Shown here: one piece after another, positions 46,830 through 53,391 of the stretch
How the letters are laid out: every line of letters starts with the position of its first letter
Position numbering within the stretch: the stretch's first letter is position 1
IMG/VR virus record: IMGVR_UViG_3300008259_005066
Location: 145,519 to 209,518 of that record
Reading direction: 5' to 3' (one strand)
DNA: 64,000 nucleotides
Notes under the pieces: generated by a model
The model's database searches: none
What the model was told of the DNA's origin: nothing
The model's input: the letters and a program-made list of their open reading frames with translations, nothing else
Position numbers and translations under genes: made by a program

Positions 46830-48611
46830 TTAGATAGTGGGCACAGGAGCGGCACCACCGGCAGGTCCTGCGCCAGCTGCGGCAGCGCCAGGAGCACCGG
46901 CCATGCCTGGAGCCATGGGTGCCACAGCACCTTCGGGTGCACCTGCGGCACCTGCGATCTCTTCACCAGCTGTGATGTCTGCTTCGATATCAGCAGGGCT
47001 GATGCCTACTGAACGCAGATCTTGACCACCTTGCGTGCTCAGTTCGGGTTGATCTCGCTCTTCTTTCCATAGTTTTTCGTTGTCTGCAATCTCTTCTTCA
47101 GACAGTCCAAGATAGCGTTTCATCAGGAATCTCTTGCTCAAATAGGGCAACTGTTCTAGCCCGCTGAACGCTGTCATCCGTGTGGTGTCCAGTTCAGCCT
47201 GGCGATAACTGGCAAAATTCTGTGGCGGTGCAAACTTGATATTGAACAGGCCAGAGTCAATGTTGAAACCTCTCCAGCGCAGGAACATCTTGAACTCGTC
47301 ATCCAGTTTCTGCACGATCTGACGTTGCATACGCTCGCAGTATTGATTGAAACGATATTCCTGTATCAGCGCAGTGCCCACACGCCCGTCATTCATAGGG
47401 CGATCAGAATCATCTGGCCCAGTGGGTAGATATGATGACGGCACACGCAGACCGCGGCACATCTTGTTGTTGAAATATTTTAAGTCGTCGATCTCGCCTA
47501 GATTCTGTCCGCCTTGCAGGGTAGTAACATCCGAGCCACGACCTTCGGCTGTGACCGGAAAGAAGTAGTCTTCGTTGATTGACAGCGGATTGTATGTGGT
47601 ATCCATGATATTTTCACGACCACCTGTATTAGACGGAATACGTCGCTGATGGATTTCATTTTTCACACGTTCCACGAACTGCATGGCCAAATGGCTGGGC
47701 ATGTTGCCCACATCAATTTTGAATATCCTGCGTTCTGGCGCACGAGATATGCGATAGATCAGGATAGCATCTTCCAGCAATTCTTTTTGCTTGAATACCT
47801 TGAATATCATCTCCAGCACTGACTGTCCAAATGGCCAATAGTAGTCCAAACCTTCGCTCAGGCTGAGATGCACCACGTGCTTGGCATCGATGCAGGTTTC
47901 GTTCACAGAACGCTGGAATCGACTCTGTCCTGACGAGTTAGGAGCATTGGGTGCTGTGTAGTTGTAGGGTGCTGAATACCCACCCGATGGTGGCTGTGTG
48001 TTGTAGTCATTGATGGTCTTGGCCGCCACTGACATGGATTGGAAATTGGGATTGATGTCTCGGATCACATACTGTTCAGGACGCTTGCCTTCGCTTTCGT
48101 TCACGATCACACGGGCCACTTTGGTCATATCCACCCAGTAGAGTTCAAAGGTTTCAGGATCACGCACAAACACTTGATCGCCATACTTCAGAGTATTGCG
48201 GAACATCTTGAACATGCGATTGTCAAACTTGTTGAGTTTGGTCCATTGCTGGAGCTGTTTCTTGATGATGTCTACTTCGTGCTCAGTGGGTGTTTCTGTG
48301 AAACCTATTTCAAAAGGTGTGTCGTTGGCCTCACAGGTCTGTGTGGAAAATTCGGCTAGGATGTCAAGGCAGGCATTGATTTCCGAATCGCCATCCATGT
48401 TCTCGTATTGATTGTAGCGTTCCATCCTGTTGGGATGGCCAGTGTAGACCTCTGGCAGTCTGCTGGCATAGTTGCGGAAGGCAAATTCCGCATGGGCTTT
48501 GTCGTCTACACCGTAGCCTGTGCCATAACTGGGACCGCGTGGAACCTGCCCCGAAATTGGGCTGAACTGTCCTGAAACATCAGCGACTTTAAAATATTTT
48601 TTCCATGACAT
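46830..48611 (-). CDS. gp20: Portal protein (gp20-like)
   Basis: LEDAILIYRISRAPERRIFKIDVGNMP..A.Q, EDYFFP..EGRGSDVTTL.GGQNLGEIDD..YF..K..R.L.VP.S. Start set at MSWKKYF (48611), 7 nt after TAAATA. Confidence 0.95.
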   Translation of the reverse strand: MSWKKYFKVADVSGQFSPISGQVPRGPSYGTGYGVDDKAHAEFAFRNYASRLPEVYTGHPNRMERYNQYENMDGDSEINACLDILAEFSTQTCEANDTPFEIGFTETPTEHEVDIIKKQLQQWTKLNKFDNRMFKMFRNTLKYGDQVFVRDPETFELYWVDMTKVARVIVNESEGKRPEQYVIRDINPNFQSMSVAAKTINDYNTQPPSGGYSAPYNYTAPNAPNSSGQSRFQRSVNETCIDAKHVVHLSLSEGLDYYWPFGQSVLEMIFKVFKQKELLEDAILIYRISRAPERRIFKIDVGNMPSHLAMQFVERVKNEIHQRRIPSNTGGRENIMDTTYNPLSINEDYFFPVTAEGRGSDVTTLQGGQNLGEIDDLKYFNNKMCRGLRVPSSYLPTGPDDSDRPMNDGRVGTALIQEYRFNQYCERMQRQIVQKLDDEFKMFLRWRGFNIDSGLFNIKFAPPQNFASYRQAELDTTRMTAFSGLEQLPYLSKRFLMKRYLGLSEEEIADNEKLWKEERDQPELSTQGGQDLRSVGISPADIEADITAGEEIAGAAGAPEGAVAPMAPGMAGAPGAAAAGAGPAGGAAPVPTI

Positions 48612-48630
48612 AGTGTTATATTTACCGCTA

Positions 48631-51009
48631 TCAGCGGGTTGCTGACAGTAACTTGCGAGATATGTCCACGTTGTTCTGTAGCAGACCAATCATGGTATCA
48701 AATCGGCTCAACTGCTCGCCCATCATGGTCACTTGTTGGCCCATGGTGTCAGTCATGCCAGTCATCTCTACCGGTATGGATCTGCCGCCAGCCAGGGGAA
48801 CCACTGCTTCTGTGCCGTGTAGCATGGCCGCATATCCCGACTTTGGACCAGATGCTATGCCACCATATTGGAAATTCCCTACCTTGCTGGGTTCTATGCC
48901 CAGCGCCTGGGCCACAGCAAACTGTATGCCCCCGCGCATGTTGTAACCTTTTTCCAGACCGCCCATGCTTTCCTTGCCAATGATACCTACCATGAGTTTG
49001 GCCATGGTGGCTGGATCTCTGGGCAGGACTTCATCAGCACCTTTGCCCATGAAGCGGGCCATTTGCTCGATATACAATCTGGTGTCGTTTTCATTGGGCG
49101 GTGCGTAAGCCGAAATGATGCTGGAGATGGTATCTCTTTTGCCACTACGGCTTTTACCTGTCAGGTAAAGATCTAACTGACGGGCCAATGCTACCAGACC
49201 ATCGTCCACAGTTTCAAATTTGGCAAATCCGCCGGTGCCCACTGTGGCTTTGTCCTGGCCTGCAAAACGTAGATTGCCAGGATTGAGATTCTTTGCGGCA
49301 GCACCCATGAGTCCAGCTGATCCTGTCATGGGTGGTTTACCAGGAGGACCACCTGCTGTTCCAGGCGGCCCCGCTCCCTGGGTGCGACTGTAGGAGCCGG
49401 GAGGTGCACCTCTGGTGATACCTGTGCCTAATATTTTGTCCAGTGCGCTGGCACCAGAGGCCAGTGAATCGGTAAACATTCCCACAGCACCTGCCATCTT
49501 GGGAAACTGTTGCACTACCACGCTGTCTATGCCCACTGCAAAATTTCTCAGCGATTTTTGTGCGCCAACCACTGTGTTTGTGAGGTCACTTTGATTGTTC
49601 TTGGCATCTTTTTGCTCTTTACCCACGGCATTTATAGCTTCTGCCGTTCCAAGGATGCCATTGGTCACAAGGCGCATTTCGGCGTATACAGGATCAAAGT
49701 ATGTGCCCAGGCCTCCCACCATGCGTTCCTGCTTGGTACCGCCCATGGTTTCATACGTTGCGGCTGTGGCTTGCCCTAGTCGTTCCATGAACGTGGCTAG
49801 ATCGCCGGTGCGTTCCAAGAAATTGACCAGTTCTGGTCCAGCACCACCAGTGGCCTGGAAGAACAACTGTGCTTCTTTAGTGCCTAGATTGTCAAAGCTG
49901 TCTTTGAAACCTTGGGCCATAGTTTTCAACCCTTTAGCTTCCAACATTGTTGCGGCACCACTGATCGCATCTGCAAATGATTTACCACGTTTACCAGCAT
50001 CAGCCAACACAGCGCCAAATTTCAACTCTCGATTTTGTTGTTCCAACCGAGACGCAACTTCTTGTCGGCTCATGCCTGTGAGTCTGGCCAGTTGATCCAA
50101 TTGCAAGATGTATTCTTTAGACGCATCAGCCAGTGAGCGAGTGTCGCGGAGATTGACTCCTGTCTGGGTGCGCTGATAACTCAGGAACTGTGCTGTGAGA
50201 TCTCGCTGTTCTTCAAAGCCAATTCCCAACTTAAGAAACTGGTCTTCAAATCCTTTGCTGGCCTTGGTGATGTCCACCACTGCTCGCATGCCCTGTGTGA
50301 CCGATCCACCTGCAAGGGCCAGACCTCGGCTGTTCTTGGCAATGACGCGGGCAAAGGAATCCATGCTGAGCCCAGTTTCCAGAGCAGCCTGTTGCAGTCC
50401 TTGGAAACTGTTGCCAGTGACACCACCAATCTTGCTGAGTTCTTGGAAGGCTCCGACCACACGTTGGGTTTCGTCCAACGAGAAGTTCATGAAAGCAGTG
50501 CCTGCGTCTACTACATCTTTACCGTGTGCCTTGATAGCCTTGCCAATCACTGACGTCACTGAACCAAGGCCCATGCCTATCATGCTGGCAATCGCACCCT
50601 TGGGACCCAGCATTATTCCAAATGACGATATGCCCGAAACGGCCTGGCCCAGGGCATCTATGGCAGTGCCCAGTCCACCGGTCATGTTTTTGAGCGCAGT
50701 GCCTGCGGCACCCACTGCTGGTTTTAATGAACGGAAATCTTCGCGATTGTCTCTAGCACCTTGCGCAGCTGATCCCAACCCAGACAACACTGCTCGAGTG
50801 GTGTCTTTGAACTTTTCCATGGCCTCGGCAGCTTTCATGGTCTGCTGGGTATGCTCGTCTTGTGCTTTGGTATTCTCGTCTTGTGCTTTGGTATTGGTAT
50901 TGATGGCCTTGTTGAGTTTGGCCATGGTTTCGGCGCTGTTGCTGCCGCTTTTGCGGAATTCCGCCATGGCCTCTTGCATCATCTTGATTAGTTTTTCTGA
51001 TTCGTCCAT
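48631..51009 (-). CDS. Tape-measure-like protein with C-terminal lysozyme-like domain
   Basis: Long Ala/Gly-rich helical region; NLNPGNLR...GFAKFET...G..AL...Y...TISSII..YAPPNENDT..Y; GGIASGP..Y..MLHGTEAVVPL. Confidence 0.7.
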   Translation of the reverse strand: MDESEKLIKMMQEAMAEFRKSGSNSAETMAKLNKAINTNTKAQDENTKAQDEHTQQTMKAAEAMEKFKDTTRAVLSGLGSAAQGARDNREDFRSLKPAVGAAGTALKNMTGGLGTAIDALGQAVSGISSFGIMLGPKGAIASMIGMGLGSVTSVIGKAIKAHGKDVVDAGTAFMNFSLDETQRVVGAFQELSKIGGVTGNSFQGLQQAALETGLSMDSFARVIAKNSRGLALAGGSVTQGMRAVVDITKASKGFEDQFLKLGIGFEEQRDLTAQFLSYQRTQTGVNLRDTRSLADASKEYILQLDQLARLTGMSRQEVASRLEQQNRELKFGAVLADAGKRGKSFADAISGAATMLEAKGLKTMAQGFKDSFDNLGTKEAQLFFQATGGAGPELVNFLERTGDLATFMERLGQATAATYETMGGTKQERMVGGLGTYFDPVYAEMRLVTNGILGTAEAINAVGKEQKDAKNNQSDLTNTVVGAQKSLRNFAVGIDSVVVQQFPKMAGAVGMFTDSLASGASALDKILGTGITRGAPPGSYSRTQGAGPPGTAGGPPGKPPMTGSAGLMGAAAKNLNPGNLRFAGQDKATVGTGGFAKFETVDDGLVALARQLDLYLTGKSRSGKRDTISSIISAYAPPNENDTRLYIEQMARFMGKGADEVLPRDPATMAKLMVGIIGKESMGGLEKGYNMRGGIQFAVAQALGIEPSKVGNFQYGGIASGPKSGYAAMLHGTEAVVPLAGGRSIPVEMTGMTDTMGQQVTMMGEQLSRFDTMIGLLQNNVDISRKLLSATR

Positions 51010-51055
51010 TATCTACGCCGATAAGTATTGTATCAATTATTTATGGTGCCCAAAT

Positions 51056-51904
51056 ATGCCAGAAACCTCTAATCCGTTACGCAAATTTTTCCGTCAGCCG
51101 GCCATTTACATCCGCCTGCCGTCGGATGGAAACTACTACCCTCAAGGTTCGCTCGAACTGCCCCCAAATCGAGAGCTGCCAGTGTATCCCATGACTGCCA
51201 TCGATGAAATAACTTATCGCACAGCAGATGCATTGTTCAATGGATCAGCATTGGTCAATGTGATCCAGAGTTGCATTCCTGCCATCAAGAACGCATGGCA
51301 TGTTCCGCAGATGGATCTTGACACACTGTTGATCGCTATCCGTATCGCCAGTTATGGACACGAAATGGATTTTGAAAGCAACTGCCCGCACTGCAACAAC
51401 GAGAACTCATTTGGCCTAGATCTCCGACAAGTCTTGGACAACATCAAAGCCGGTGACTACAGCGAATCTATCAAACACGGCGACGTAGAGATATTTTTCC
51501 GGCCGCTGAGTTATGAACAGGCCAACGCCAATTCCATGAAGCAGTTCCAGGATCAGAAAATCCTGGACAGCCTACCAAATTCCGATCTGCCCGAAGAAGA
51601 AAAGATACGCTTGCTCACACAGGCCTTCCAGAAACTCACGGTCATGACTATGTCTGCCCTGAGCGGTGTGATCTCCATGATCCGTGCCGATGGTGAAATA
51701 GTGGTGGAACCCGAACACATAGAAGAGTTTGTTCAAAACTGCGACAGAGAGATCTTCAACTCCATACGTGATCATGCCACACAACTGCGTGAGCACAGCG
51801 AACTCAAACCCTTGAGACTCAAATGCAACGGGCCAGAATGCCAGAAAGAATACGAAACACCATTCACCCTGGATGTCTCAAATTTTTTCGTATCCGCCTC
51901 CTGA
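51056..51904 (+). CDS. gp26: Baseplate hub assembly protein (gp26-like)
   Basis: Start MPETSNPL (51056); LPVYPMTAIDE, DLDTLLIAIRIASYG, CPHC and C-terminal C..C zinc motifs. Confidence 0.75.
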   Translation: MPETSNPLRKFFRQPAIYIRLPSDGNYYPQGSLELPPNRELPVYPMTAIDEITYRTADALFNGSALVNVIQSCIPAIKNAWHVPQMDLDTLLIAIRIASYGHEMDFESNCPHCNNENSFGLDLRQVLDNIKAGDYSESIKHGDVEIFFRPLSYEQANANSMKQFQDQKILDSLPNSDLPEEEKIRLLTQAFQKLTVMTMSALSGVISMIRADGEIVVEPEHIEEFVQNCDREIFNSIRDHATQLREHSELKPLRLKCNGPECQKEYETPFTLDVSNFFVSAS

Positions 51905-52119
51905 CCTCGAGTCCTGAGCGCATCACCAAAATAGTAGAAGGATATGATCGTGAAGTCAAAGCAATCAAAGACGACATATTCAAGATGTGTTGGTATATGC
52001 GAGGAGGCCTGACCTATGAAGAAGCACTCAATCTCAGTTTTGGTGAGCGAGAATCTGTGGGTGCATTGATCAAAGAAAATCTCGAGACCACTAAAAAAAC
52101 CGGAATGGCATTCTTCTAA
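51880..52119 (+). CDS. gp51-like C-terminal extension, probably reached by -1 frameshift from the gp26-like ORF
   Basis: The -1 frame is open across A_AAT_TTT_TTC (51880-51889); it encodes WYMRGGLTYEEALNLSFGERESVGALIKENLE, similar to the T4 gp51 C-terminus. No RBS-preceded start is evident. Confidence 0.65.
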   Translation, partial: KFFRIRLLTSSPERITKIVEGYDREVKAIKDDIFKMCWYMRGGLTYEEALNLSFGERESVGALIKENLETTKKTGMAFF

Positions 52120-52622
52120 TGCAACTAGAGCAAGTAAAACAAGATATCGAACGATGGATAGAAACCTTTGTTGAAGTCCCTAATCCTGCGCTGGGCGGAT
52201 GGCCACCTTGCCCTTATGCACGCCGAGCACGCTTGGATCGCAGTTACGAAATACGCATAGGTGTTGATGTTTACACCGATCTCATGGATCTAGCAACCAC
52301 AGGATTGGGCAACAAAGAAGTCATCATCTATGCATATGATTCCGCGCAATGGCCCAGAGAACAATTTGCCCGCGATCTTCATTCTGTGAATGTTGGATTT
52401 CTCTTGCCTCAAGATATCATTGCGCTAGAAGATCATCCTGCAGATCTTGAATGGGTAAATGGTGTGTGCATGAACCAAGGAACCTATGCCCTGGCACTGT
52501 GCCAGAGTGTGAGTGATCTTGACAGCAAGGCCCGGTCCATGGCCACGAAAGGCTTCTACCACACTTGGCCAGAAGAATACCTAAAAGATCTGTTCCAACA
52601 TAGAAAGGACCCAAGACAATGA
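52119..52622 (+). CDS. Hypothetical protein, DUF1415-like
   Basis: WIETFVE...GWPPCPYAR resembles the L.LCPFA motif; coupled to the upstream stop (TAATG). Confidence 0.5.
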   Translation: MQLEQVKQDIERWIETFVEVPNPALGGWPPCPYARRARLDRSYEIRIGVDVYTDLMDLATTGLGNKEVIIYAYDSAQWPREQFARDLHSVNVGFLLPQDIIALEDHPADLEWVNGVCMNQGTYALALCQSVSDLDSKARSMATKGFYHTWPEEYLKDLFQHRKDPRQ

Positions 52623-53059
52623 CCTATCAATTTGCCCGTATCAATCTAGCAAAAACCAATTATCAAGCATCAGCCCAGTGGGGATATCTCATACCTACCG
52701 AACAGCAAATGGTGGAACTTGACAATATCTATAGAACTTACTGTATCTATAAGCATTTCAGTAGTGTGATACCCATGTTTCGAAGCCGATATACCGATCC
52801 AATGACTGACGTCATTGGATATTTTGATCAAGAACGCATGGTAGCATTCAGTCTCATACGAAGGTATGACGACAAAAATGCTCTCTGTGATCAATTTGCA
52901 TGGACATATCATGATCCGCAATCAAGATTGGGCATTGAAACCATGAAAACAGAATGTGCCATATACAAAGCAAGGGGCTTTGATTATCTCTATCTCGAGC
53001 AGGCACATCTTTACAAAAAAGAGATAGAAGGATTTGAAATACTAGGACCAATGACATGA
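52619..53059 (+). CDS. Arginyl/leucyl-tRNA-protein transferase C-terminal-domain-like (ATE/Bpt, GNAT fold)
   Basis: IYRTYCIYKH, MVAFSL, DPQSRLGIETM...A...GFDYLYL...YK pattern matches the ATE_C layout. Confidence 0.5.
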   Translation: MTYQFARINLAKTNYQASAQWGYLIPTEQQMVELDNIYRTYCIYKHFSSVIPMFRSRYTDPMTDVIGYFDQERMVAFSLIRRYDDKNALCDQFAWTYHDPQSRLGIETMKTECAIYKARGFDYLYLEQAHLYKKEIEGFEILGPMT

Positions 53060-53391
53060 GCGACTTATACACGATATGGGCAGACAAAGAAGGTGATATC
53101 TCAGACCTTGATTGGGTCACAGGAATGCGAAGTTTTTTTGAGCACCTGATGTCTGAGGGCAAGATGATGAGTTATAGGATAACCCGTTGCAAGATGGGAT
53201 TCCGTTCAATCGCAGACATGCCCGAATGGATGATCATCATGGAGTTTAAAGACATGGCACAGATGGACTCAGCATTTCGTCGTGTGGCGCCATTGGAAGG
53301 CGAACTCGAAGAAAAACACAAAAGTTTCAATCAGTTTGTTTCGGGCAACATCCAGCACGCACTGTTCCGTGATTGGCCTGATCAGTTCTAA
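53056..53391 (+). CDS. Hypothetical protein, dimeric alpha-beta barrel (DUF6614-like)
   Basis: YTIWAD...SYRITRCKMGF...WMIIMEFKDMAQMDSAF; ATGA-coupled to the upstream gene. Confidence 0.5.
   Translation: MSDLYTIWADKEGDISDLDWVTGMRSFFEHLMSEGKMMSYRITRCKMGFRSIADMPEWMIIMEFKDMAQMDSAFRRVAPLEGELEEKHKSFNQFVSGNIQHALFRDWPDQF

Follow-up and report, generated by a model that had tools for sequence, protein, structure and literature searches.

A probable programmed −1 frameshift yields a short and an extended baseplate-hub assembly protein from one gene of a freshwater jumbo phage

In phage T4, the hub subunit/chaperone gp26 (208 aa) and the hub assembly catalyst gp51 (249 aa) are encoded by two divergently transcribed genes without any frameshift, although both proteins belong to the same Pfam family (PF12322) and the same PHROG (phrog_150). 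Both are listed as chaperones of hub assembly, and gp51 is absent from virions (PMC3004832). A different genetic arrangement is known from the tail assembly chaperones G/GT of lambda and E/E+E' of phage P2, where a −1 shift close to the end of a short ORF yields a minor product with the same N-terminal part plus an added domain; in lambda the ratio of the two products matters for tail assembly and neither product is in virions (PMC5009743). Here, we analysed a window of 64,000 nucleotides from IMG/VR record IMGVR_UViG_3300008259_005066, derived from a T4-related freshwater jumbo phage, and our comparative analysis indicates that a single PF12322 gene almost certainly makes both a short and a C-terminally extended product by a programmed backward slip of the ribosome, although the fusion protein itself remains to be demonstrated. 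We found no annotation or paper describing such an event for gp26, gp51 or baseplate-hub genes, and the papers on RaK2, PA5oct and Atu_ph07 do not mention a frameshift, but as the literature available to us was incomplete we cannot exclude a prior description.

The zero-frame ORF at 51056–51904 (+) encodes 282 aa, ending in DVSNFFVSAS, and was assigned to PF12322 (T4_baseplate) with 56.2 bits against a cut-off of 24.5 (E 5e-15), residues 64–278 aligning with profile positions 43–218 of 219. It also matched phrog_150 ('baseplate hub') over profile positions 6–234 of 282; the same profile covers gp26 to position 235 and gp51 to position 280. Just upstream of the zero-frame stop (TGA, 51902–51904) the sequence reads TCA AAT TTT TTC GTA TCC GCC TCC TGA, with AAA at 51880–51882, the run of six T's at 51883–51888 and C at 51889, such that the heptamer T_TTT_TTC (51883–51889) lies four codons before the stop and places Phe277 and Phe278 in the P and A sites. 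The −1 frame is open from 51793 to the TAA at 52117–52119, and from the heptamer onwards it provides an extension of 76 codons (51889–52119 (+); RIRLLTSSPE…KKTGMAFF) plus TAA. The long product is thus 278 + 76 = 354 aa (51056–51889 joined to 51889–52116, with base 51889 read twice), rather than the approximately 353 aa given in a first-pass annotation of the sequence. The latter also proposed A_AAT_TTT as a second, overlapping slippery heptamer; however, this is lost wherever the preceding codon is AGT, CGT, CAT, CTT or GAT, and only T_TTT_TTC is conserved. The TAA of the extension overlaps the ATG of the next gene (52119–52622 (+), 167 aa, unknown function) as TAATG.

Comparison with relatives supports the central inference of the first-pass annotation, namely that one gene gives a gp26-type and an extended gp51-type product through a −1 shift at the T-run. 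Blastn of the locus against cultured phages gave no match and tblastn was needed. The arrangement was seen in 76 distinct environmental relatives (51–100% identity) and in the six cultured jumbo phages whose DNA we read (RaK2, a 121Q-like phage, PA5oct, Atu_ph07, Phosso and SCTP-2), with reading-frame offsets suggesting the same in GAP32 and Xoo-sp13. The pattern NNT TTT TTC was found in 81 of 81 distinct loci, spanning 23% to 100% protein identity, while flanking synonymous sites vary and other Phe-Phe pairs in the same ORFs use all four codon combinations (25/19/18/12); the per-lineage chance is about 0.07. It should be noted that the loci are phylogenetically related and that these counts do not represent independent events. 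The base following the heptamer is G in 81 of 81 loci (A in PA5oct); the zero-frame residue at this point is A, E, G, V or D, whereas the −1 codon is always CGN (Arg), and selection therefore acts on the −1 frame from its first codon. The extension is 76 aa in 72 of 72 complete loci, with a mean column identity of 65%, and the position of highest variability among the three codon positions moves by −1 at the heptamer. A zero-frame stop lies four codons (72 loci) or one codon (4 loci) after Phe-Phe in all 76 environmental loci, and in locus L052 a −1-frame TAG abuts the T-run, narrowing the shift window to the heptamer itself.

Sister lineages of uncultured phages, for example L102–L109, carry two adjacent PF12322 genes instead, in the same order of portal, an ORF of approximately 800 aa and the PF12322 genes as in the window. 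All six in-frame long forms that we looked up sit next to a second, short gene that ends 1–4 residues after NF[F/L/M]. The in-frame long forms (319–351 aa) read F-R-x-K/R-I/L-L straight through the junction without slippery DNA (TTC TTT and similar), and carry the same extension (profile scores of 1e-12 to 1e-22). In BLASTP the short product aligned to most of them up to residue 278 (280 for three; shorter for P0310 and P0356), and for the long form P0241 the extension profile starts at the very next residue (1–270 and 271–345). The paralogues of these lineages have diverged from each other far more (1e-5 to 1e-25) than either has from the single frameshifted gene (1e-28 to 1e-49). We found one PF12322 gene in Atu_ph07, Ecwhy_1, Phosso and a 91%-complete close relative of the present genome, but two in T4.

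The relationship to the T4 proteins appears to be one of architecture and is not one of orthology. T4 gp26 ends (EFFELL) right after the same Phe-Phe motif where the short product ends here, although encoded as TTC TTT, while gp51 carries a C-terminal helical extension of about 45 aa as compared to 76 aa in the present case. The whole fusion aligned end to end with the gp51 family in profile comparison (Prob 95.6, E 4e-9 in global mode; E 1.9e-5 in local mode, reaching the gp51 C-terminus). The resemblance of the end of the extension to that of T4 gp51, noted in the first-pass annotation, was reproduced but is weak on its own (E about 1e-3): an HMMER search of the T4 genome with the extension profile gave no candidate, and gp51 members outranked 403 decoy ORFs only at non-significant E-values. 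PHROG and Pfam scans of the extension alone likewise gave nothing significant. In the tree, T4 gp26 and the gp51 family form one clade (100/100), apart from all sequences of the jumbo-phage group. The tree is unrooted, the long forms are paraphyletic and many forks are unresolved, and it could not give a direction of evolution.

A putative stimulatory stem may contribute to the slip. Its 5′ arm (GCCUCCU, 51896–51902) begins 6 nt after the heptamer and pairs in the minimum-energy fold with AGGAGGC at 52002–52008, within the codons for the invariant Arg-Gly-Gly. The same segment has a perfect downstream complement of at least 7 nt in 69% of 71 loci, against 2.5% of background windows and 17–20% after redrawing synonymous codons, and the arm is paired in 61 of 71 minimum-energy folds. 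The partner lies at +119 here but at about +65 or +85 in other lineages, and different arm sequences are compensated in Atu_ph07 (9 bp), Phosso (8 bp) and RaK2 (7 bp), with nothing comparable in the two-gene lineages. Fold z-scores were −7.0, −4.0, −5.1 and −3.0 in four relatives, yet the fold in the present window is only marginally better than shuffles (z −1.8; 13 of 200 shuffles fold as well) and RaK2 gives z about 0. Moreover, RNAalifold on 32 aligned sequences found no consensus structure, a fixed register (columns 12–18 with 119–125) was 82% paired but showed no covariation beyond shuffles, and a generic 60-nt downstream window gave only a mild z of −0.9; the signal appeared only when the partner was allowed to sit at different positions.

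Taken together, we are highly confident in the following model, which rests on sequence comparison and in which the ribosomal nature of the shift is inferred. Most ribosomes release the 282-aa short form, while a fraction slips back one base with the Phe-tRNAs on UUU and UUC of U_UUU_UUC, both re-pairing with UUU, and reads CGU onwards in the −1 frame to add a 76-residue helical extension. The stem, whose role is likewise inferred, probably raises the slip rate. By homology to the T4 proteins, we infer that the two products act together as assembly chaperones of the baseplate hub or tape-measure complex, in a ratio set by frameshift efficiency.

Of the alternatives, transcriptional slippage is very unlikely. 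Addition of one U by RNA polymerase in the homopolymer run would yield the same 354-aa fusion, and contig data cannot exclude a minority of T7 transcripts, as assemblies drop rare variants. On the other hand, six T's would appear short for efficient slippage by bacterial RNA polymerase, and the run length is fixed, with exactly six T's in 75 of the 76 environmental loci and in all six cultured phages read, and seven in one locus (L066, with CTT before the Phe codons). The conserved feature is the in-frame pattern NNT TTT TTC and not run length as such; a putative stem kept 6 nt downstream would be the classic ribosomal stimulator; and the one RNA-derived contig across the site has T6. It is similarly unlikely that the −1 ORF is translated on its own as a 70–98-aa protein, by its own start or by termination-reinitiation, as GenBank records of Atu_ph07, 121Q-like phages and Phosso annotate it; phrog_18291 treats the 121Q-type ORF as a family of its own. 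Atu_ph07 and Phosso have ATGA, and Ecwhy_1 has TAATG, at the zero-frame stop, and a separate small product is possible in such phages in addition. Contrary to the first-pass annotation, which saw no obvious start, the window does have two upstream −1-frame ATGs (51823 and 51838), but these are not conserved and many relatives have a −1-frame stop between them and the site. Furthermore, 40 of 76 loci have no ATG, and 23 of 76 have no ATG, GTG or TTG at all; conservation starts at the Arg codon overlapping the heptamer, upstream of any such ATG; the synonymous sites of the heptamer would have no reason to be frozen; and homologues fuse the two parts in frame. Finally, although homopolymer runs are error-prone and in-frame long forms exist in other lineages, a sequencing indel or pseudogene is effectively refuted, given that more than 4000 homologues of the short product are all about 276–290 aa, that six other IMG/VR contigs and two independent metagenome assemblies carry the identical T6 and one metatranscriptome contig spans the site without indel, that the same frame structure is seen in more than 80 distinct sequences from many samples and in independently sequenced cultured phages, and that both frames are under purifying selection.

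The first-pass annotation further linked the locus to the G/GT strategy and described it as divergent from the tape measure. We consider the former an analogy of strategy: no tail-assembly-chaperone (TAC) family was found among the Pfam or PHROG hits, a PDB sequence search with the gp26-like profile found no relative with a solved structure, and Foldseek of a high-confidence model of a long form against PDB and AFDB Swiss-Prot gave no significant match. Nor does the gene lie between the tube gene and the tape-measure gene on the same strand. Its divergent neighbour (48631–51009 (−), 792 aa, 13% Gly and 12% Ala, with a lysozyme-like domain at residues about 571–682) is a plausible tape-measure or ejection protein only; it hit phrog_873 and phrog_7182, PDB 9vvp_L 'Gp29' (E 1.8e-7) and an endolysin, but BLASTP showed no similarity to T4 gp29. 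It is syntenic in relatives, next to the T4-type portal (gp20) gene (46830–48689 (−); PF07230, E 5e-104). The RaK2 counterpart is annotated as tape-measure-like and the PA5oct counterpart was detected in virions, whereas in Atu_ph07 the annotated tape measure lies 15 genes away. As for dnaX of E. coli, where the shift shortens the product, the proteins are unrelated, and here the shift lengthens the product. It is possible, though tentative, that the PF12322 short/long pair is the T4-superfamily counterpart of the G/GT chaperones, the short form coating the hub or tape-measure precursor and the rarer long form using its helical extension to recruit the next component. On this view the frameshifted single gene would be ancestral, and T4 gp26/gp51 and the tandem pairs would be independently resolved duplicates, which would explain why gp51 acts catalytically and is absent from virions.

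The locus adds a conserved, apparently unannotated recoding event to a whole clade of jumbo phages that includes therapy-candidate phages; GenBank records of PA5oct and RaK2 leave the extension unannotated, while those of Atu_ph07, 121Q-like phages and Phosso call it a separate hypothetical protein and PHROGs lists it as an unknown family. With the partner arm at three positions, it also offers a natural series of slippery-site and stem variants for studying how −1 frameshift stimulators evolve inside coding sequence. It extends the frameshifted assembly chaperone strategy, known from G/GT-type genes, to an unrelated protein family acting at the baseplate hub, and makes the function of the gp51 extension directly testable. 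It may also give an evolutionary reason for the long-puzzling T4 pair gp26/gp51, in that the family seems to need both a short and a C-terminally extended form, which are supplied by three different genetic solutions: a frameshift, tandem genes and divergent genes.

The locus lies within the last 64 kb of a 209.5-kb IMG/VR viral contig, estimated to be about 60% complete, from a freshwater phage that is seen in many independent metagenomes. The plus-strand ORF 51056-51904 encodes 282 aa and matches both Pfam PF12322 'T4_baseplate' (56 bits, cut-off 24.5) and phrog_150 'baseplate hub'. Its last codons read TCA AAT TTT TTC GTA TCC GCC TCC TGA, in which the T6 run plus C occupies 51883-51889 and has the form X_XXY_YYZ in the zero frame, while the -1 frame is open from 51793 to the TAA at 52117-52119. 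A -1 slip on this heptamer would join residues 1-278 to 76 further residues, giving a product of 354 aa. Of note, the next gene (52119-52622, 167 aa, of unknown function and with weak phrog_28122 and DUF6875 hits) starts with an ATG that overlaps the TAA of the -1 extension (TAATG, 52117-52121), and its start is therefore coupled to the end of the long product's frame and not to the short ORF. Three genes downstream of the frameshifted gene, a 111-aa ORF (53056-53391) matches DUF6614 (PF20319, E 1e-21), a family of unknown function.

The arrangement is neither an error nor a product of chance. More than 4000 database homologues are all about 276-290 aa, and six other viral contigs, as well as two metagenome assemblies from other samples, carry the identical T6. 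We retrieved 89 related loci, 51-100% identical, and in 76 distinct sequences TTTTTTCG is invariant, the zero-frame stop follows four codons (72 loci) or one codon (4 loci) later, and the -1 ORF is always exactly 76 codons. The codon before the two Phe codons encodes N, S, R or L but always ends in T, and the two Phe codons are always TTT TTC, whereas other Phe-Phe pairs in the same ORFs use all four combinations (25/19/18/12). In one set of mapped assemblies (run X4), the summed contig depth jumps from about 17 to about 98 exactly over the slippery site and the 5' arm of the putative stem described below (51848-51919); many short contigs from related strains map there, reflecting the unusual nucleotide-level conservation of this short stretch. 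The same arrangement occurs in cultured jumbo phages of several genera at only 23-33% protein identity; it was read directly in the DNA of six, namely Atu_ph07, Phosso, Ecwhy_1 (121Q-like), RaK2, PA5oct and SCTP-2, and tblastn reading-frame offsets suggest the same in GAP32 and Xoo-sp13.

Sequence conservation indicates that the extension is translated, and that it is translated from the junction. The 76-residue peptide is well conserved, with a mean column identity of 65% and with R1, L4, L5, W35, R38, G39, G40, R54, E66 and T67 invariant, and nucleotide variability peaks at zero-frame codon position 3 upstream of the site and at -1-frame position 3 downstream of it. The base after the heptamer is always G; the zero-frame residue there is A, E, G, V or D, yet the -1 codon is always CGN (Arg), and the constraint therefore belongs to the -1 frame. 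In 23 of 76 loci no ATG, GTG or TTG exists in the -1 frame between its upstream stop and 45 nt past the site. Moreover, in the related locus L052 a -1-frame TAG abuts the T-run, and in four loci the zero-frame stop lies one codon after the heptamer, so that the frame change must happen on the heptamer.

Independent support came from natural fusions. A profile of the extension, searched against 1.8 billion representative proteins, found 459 hits, including short ORFs as gene callers see them and twenty proteins of 319-351 aa with the extension at their C-terminus. These in-frame long forms read ...LD..s.F-R-x-K/R-I/L-L... straight through the junction, and their junction DNA is not slippery. 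BLASTP of the window's short product against them ends at residue 278 for most of them, and for one, P0241, the extension profile begins at the very next residue. All six that we looked up lie directly downstream of a second, short PF12322 gene (276-300 aa) that ends one to four residues after NF[F/L/M], in the same synteny as the window: portal, then an ~800-aa Gly/Ala-rich ORF on the other strand, then the PF12322 gene or genes. In contrast, complete genomes with the heptamer hold a single PF12322 gene, these being Atu_ph07, Ecwhy_1, Phosso and a 91%-complete near-identical relative of this phage, whereas T4 holds two, gp26 and gp51. The single frameshifted gene is about equally close to both paralogues of the two-gene lineages (E 1e-28 to 1e-49), while the paralogues themselves have drifted apart (1e-5 to 1e-25).

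Five of the six short paralogues in the two-gene lineages (those of loci L102, L104, L105, L107 and L109) have lost the second Cys-x-x-Cys pair near the C-terminus, which the frameshifted gene and the long forms keep (for example, in a protein ending ...SGAPTTWQSDLIFAGTSFFND), and this suggests that the short copy relaxed after duplication. SegE-like GIY-YIG homing-endonuclease genes lie next to or near the PF12322 gene pair in several of these lineages (L105:4619-5143; L109:9419-9886; and an NCBI contig), in L105 directly upstream of the short gene, and mobile endonucleases could have played a part in rearranging the locus. In L109 (1-2709) and in the same NCBI contig, the T4-type portal gene carries an intein (PF14890, with a faint HNH hit), while the portal of the window (46830-48689) shows no intein hit. 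It should be mentioned that the portal ORF as listed, with a TTG start at 48689, overlaps the 3' end of the 792-aa ORF by 59 nt (48631-48689), and that the true portal start is probably a downstream codon.

Both T4 proteins match PF12322 over their first ~200 residues, and in phrog_150 gp26 covers profile positions 14-235, gp51 covers 13-280 and the window's short product covers 6-234. T4 gp26 ends EFFELL, just after the same Phe-Phe, encoded TTC TTT, and gp51 continues for about 45 more residues. An alignment of fusions plus natural long forms aligns with the gp51 family end to end, for which hhalign gave Prob 95.6 and E 4e-9 in global mode and E 1.9e-5 in local mode, matching FFRxRLL..PE.I to F-K-LL-NPDE-I and ..LS..ER..I..IKEN to ..MIP.ER......EKD. 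However, when tested alone the extension gave only E about 1e-3, HMMER found nothing in T4, and gp51 members outranked 403 decoy ORFs but at non-significant E-values. In a maximum-likelihood tree, T4 gp26 and gp51 are sisters, separate from the jumbo-phage group, and the correspondence is therefore one of architecture and not of orthology, with no direction of evolution implied. An AlphaFold model of the natural long form P0241 is very confident (pLDDT 95.8) and puts the junction inside a predicted helix (266-275), followed by three more helices; the model has no relative in the PDB or AFDB, but does match many phage 'baseplate hub (assembly)' proteins in the BFVD library of predicted viral protein structures.

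A putative stem downstream of the heptamer probably acts as a stimulator of the shift. Although RNAalifold detected nothing, the segment that starts 6 nt after the heptamer (GCCUCCU, 51896-51902) has a perfect complement of at least 7 nt within the next 150 nt in 69% of 71 loci, compared to 2.5% for 2460 background windows of the same loci and 17-20% when the amino-acid sequence is kept and synonymous codons are redrawn; for complements of at least 8 nt the figures are 34% against 0.6% and 5-6%. The partner sits at about +65, +85 or +115 in different lineages, and in the window it is AGGAGGC at 52002-52008. Cultured phages have different arm sequences with matching partners, i.e. GGCUCUUUG/CAAAGAGCC in Atu_ph07, GGCUCUUG/CAAGAGCC in Phosso and CAGCUUC/GAAGCUG in RaK2, and the two-gene lineages have nothing comparable. 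Fold z-scores are -7.0 (Atu_ph07), -4.0 (Phosso), -5.1 and -3.0 (two environmental loci), -1.8 (window) and 0 (RaK2); over all 71 loci, +7..+131 gives a mean z of -1.9, against -0.5 for a control segment, and the arm is paired to a distant downstream partner in 61 minimum-energy folds. We consider this good statistical evidence for a stem with a canonical spacer, while its stimulatory role remains putative.

To our knowledge the frameshift has not been described. None of the seven GenBank records inspected annotates one, and the RefSeq and GenBank records leave the stretch that encodes the extension entirely unannotated in PA5oct (L110:2352-2576) and RaK2 (L111:2349-2714), while phrog_18291 ('unknown function', 59 positions) is the same -1 ORF as called in 121Q-like phages. 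The RaK2, PA5oct and Atu_ph07 papers, a comprehensive recoding review and the PRFect paper do not mention it, and full-text searches found nothing, although the literature covered was incomplete and a prior description may have escaped us.

The 792-aa divergent neighbor is Gly/Ala-rich, has a lysozyme-like domain and is annotated as tape-measure-like in RaK2, but shows no similarity to T4 gp29, and it is a plausible tape measure and not an established one. The 46-nt divergent intergenic region (51010-51055) contains CATAAATAA on the minus strand, about 25 nt upstream of the ATG of the 792-aa ORF, which resembles TATAAATA, probably the T4 late-promoter box. With regard to the virion, the PA5oct homologue of the frameshifted gene carries no virion-MS note, while its neighbor does, whereas the RaK2 paper lists ORF087 among the predicted structural genes and does not include it among those missed by mass spectrometry. 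The first-pass annotation linked the locus to the strategy of lambda G/GT, and the parallel (PMC5009743) is one of strategy only; that the pair works like G/GT is a tentative suggestion. We conclude that this is a real, conserved and apparently undescribed programmed -1 frameshift, and are highly confident that a trans-frame 354-aa product is made, as inferred from sequence comparison. By homology, the products are inferred to be hub assembly chaperones; T4 gp26 and gp51 are listed as such, and gp51 is required for assembly but absent from particles (PMC3004832).
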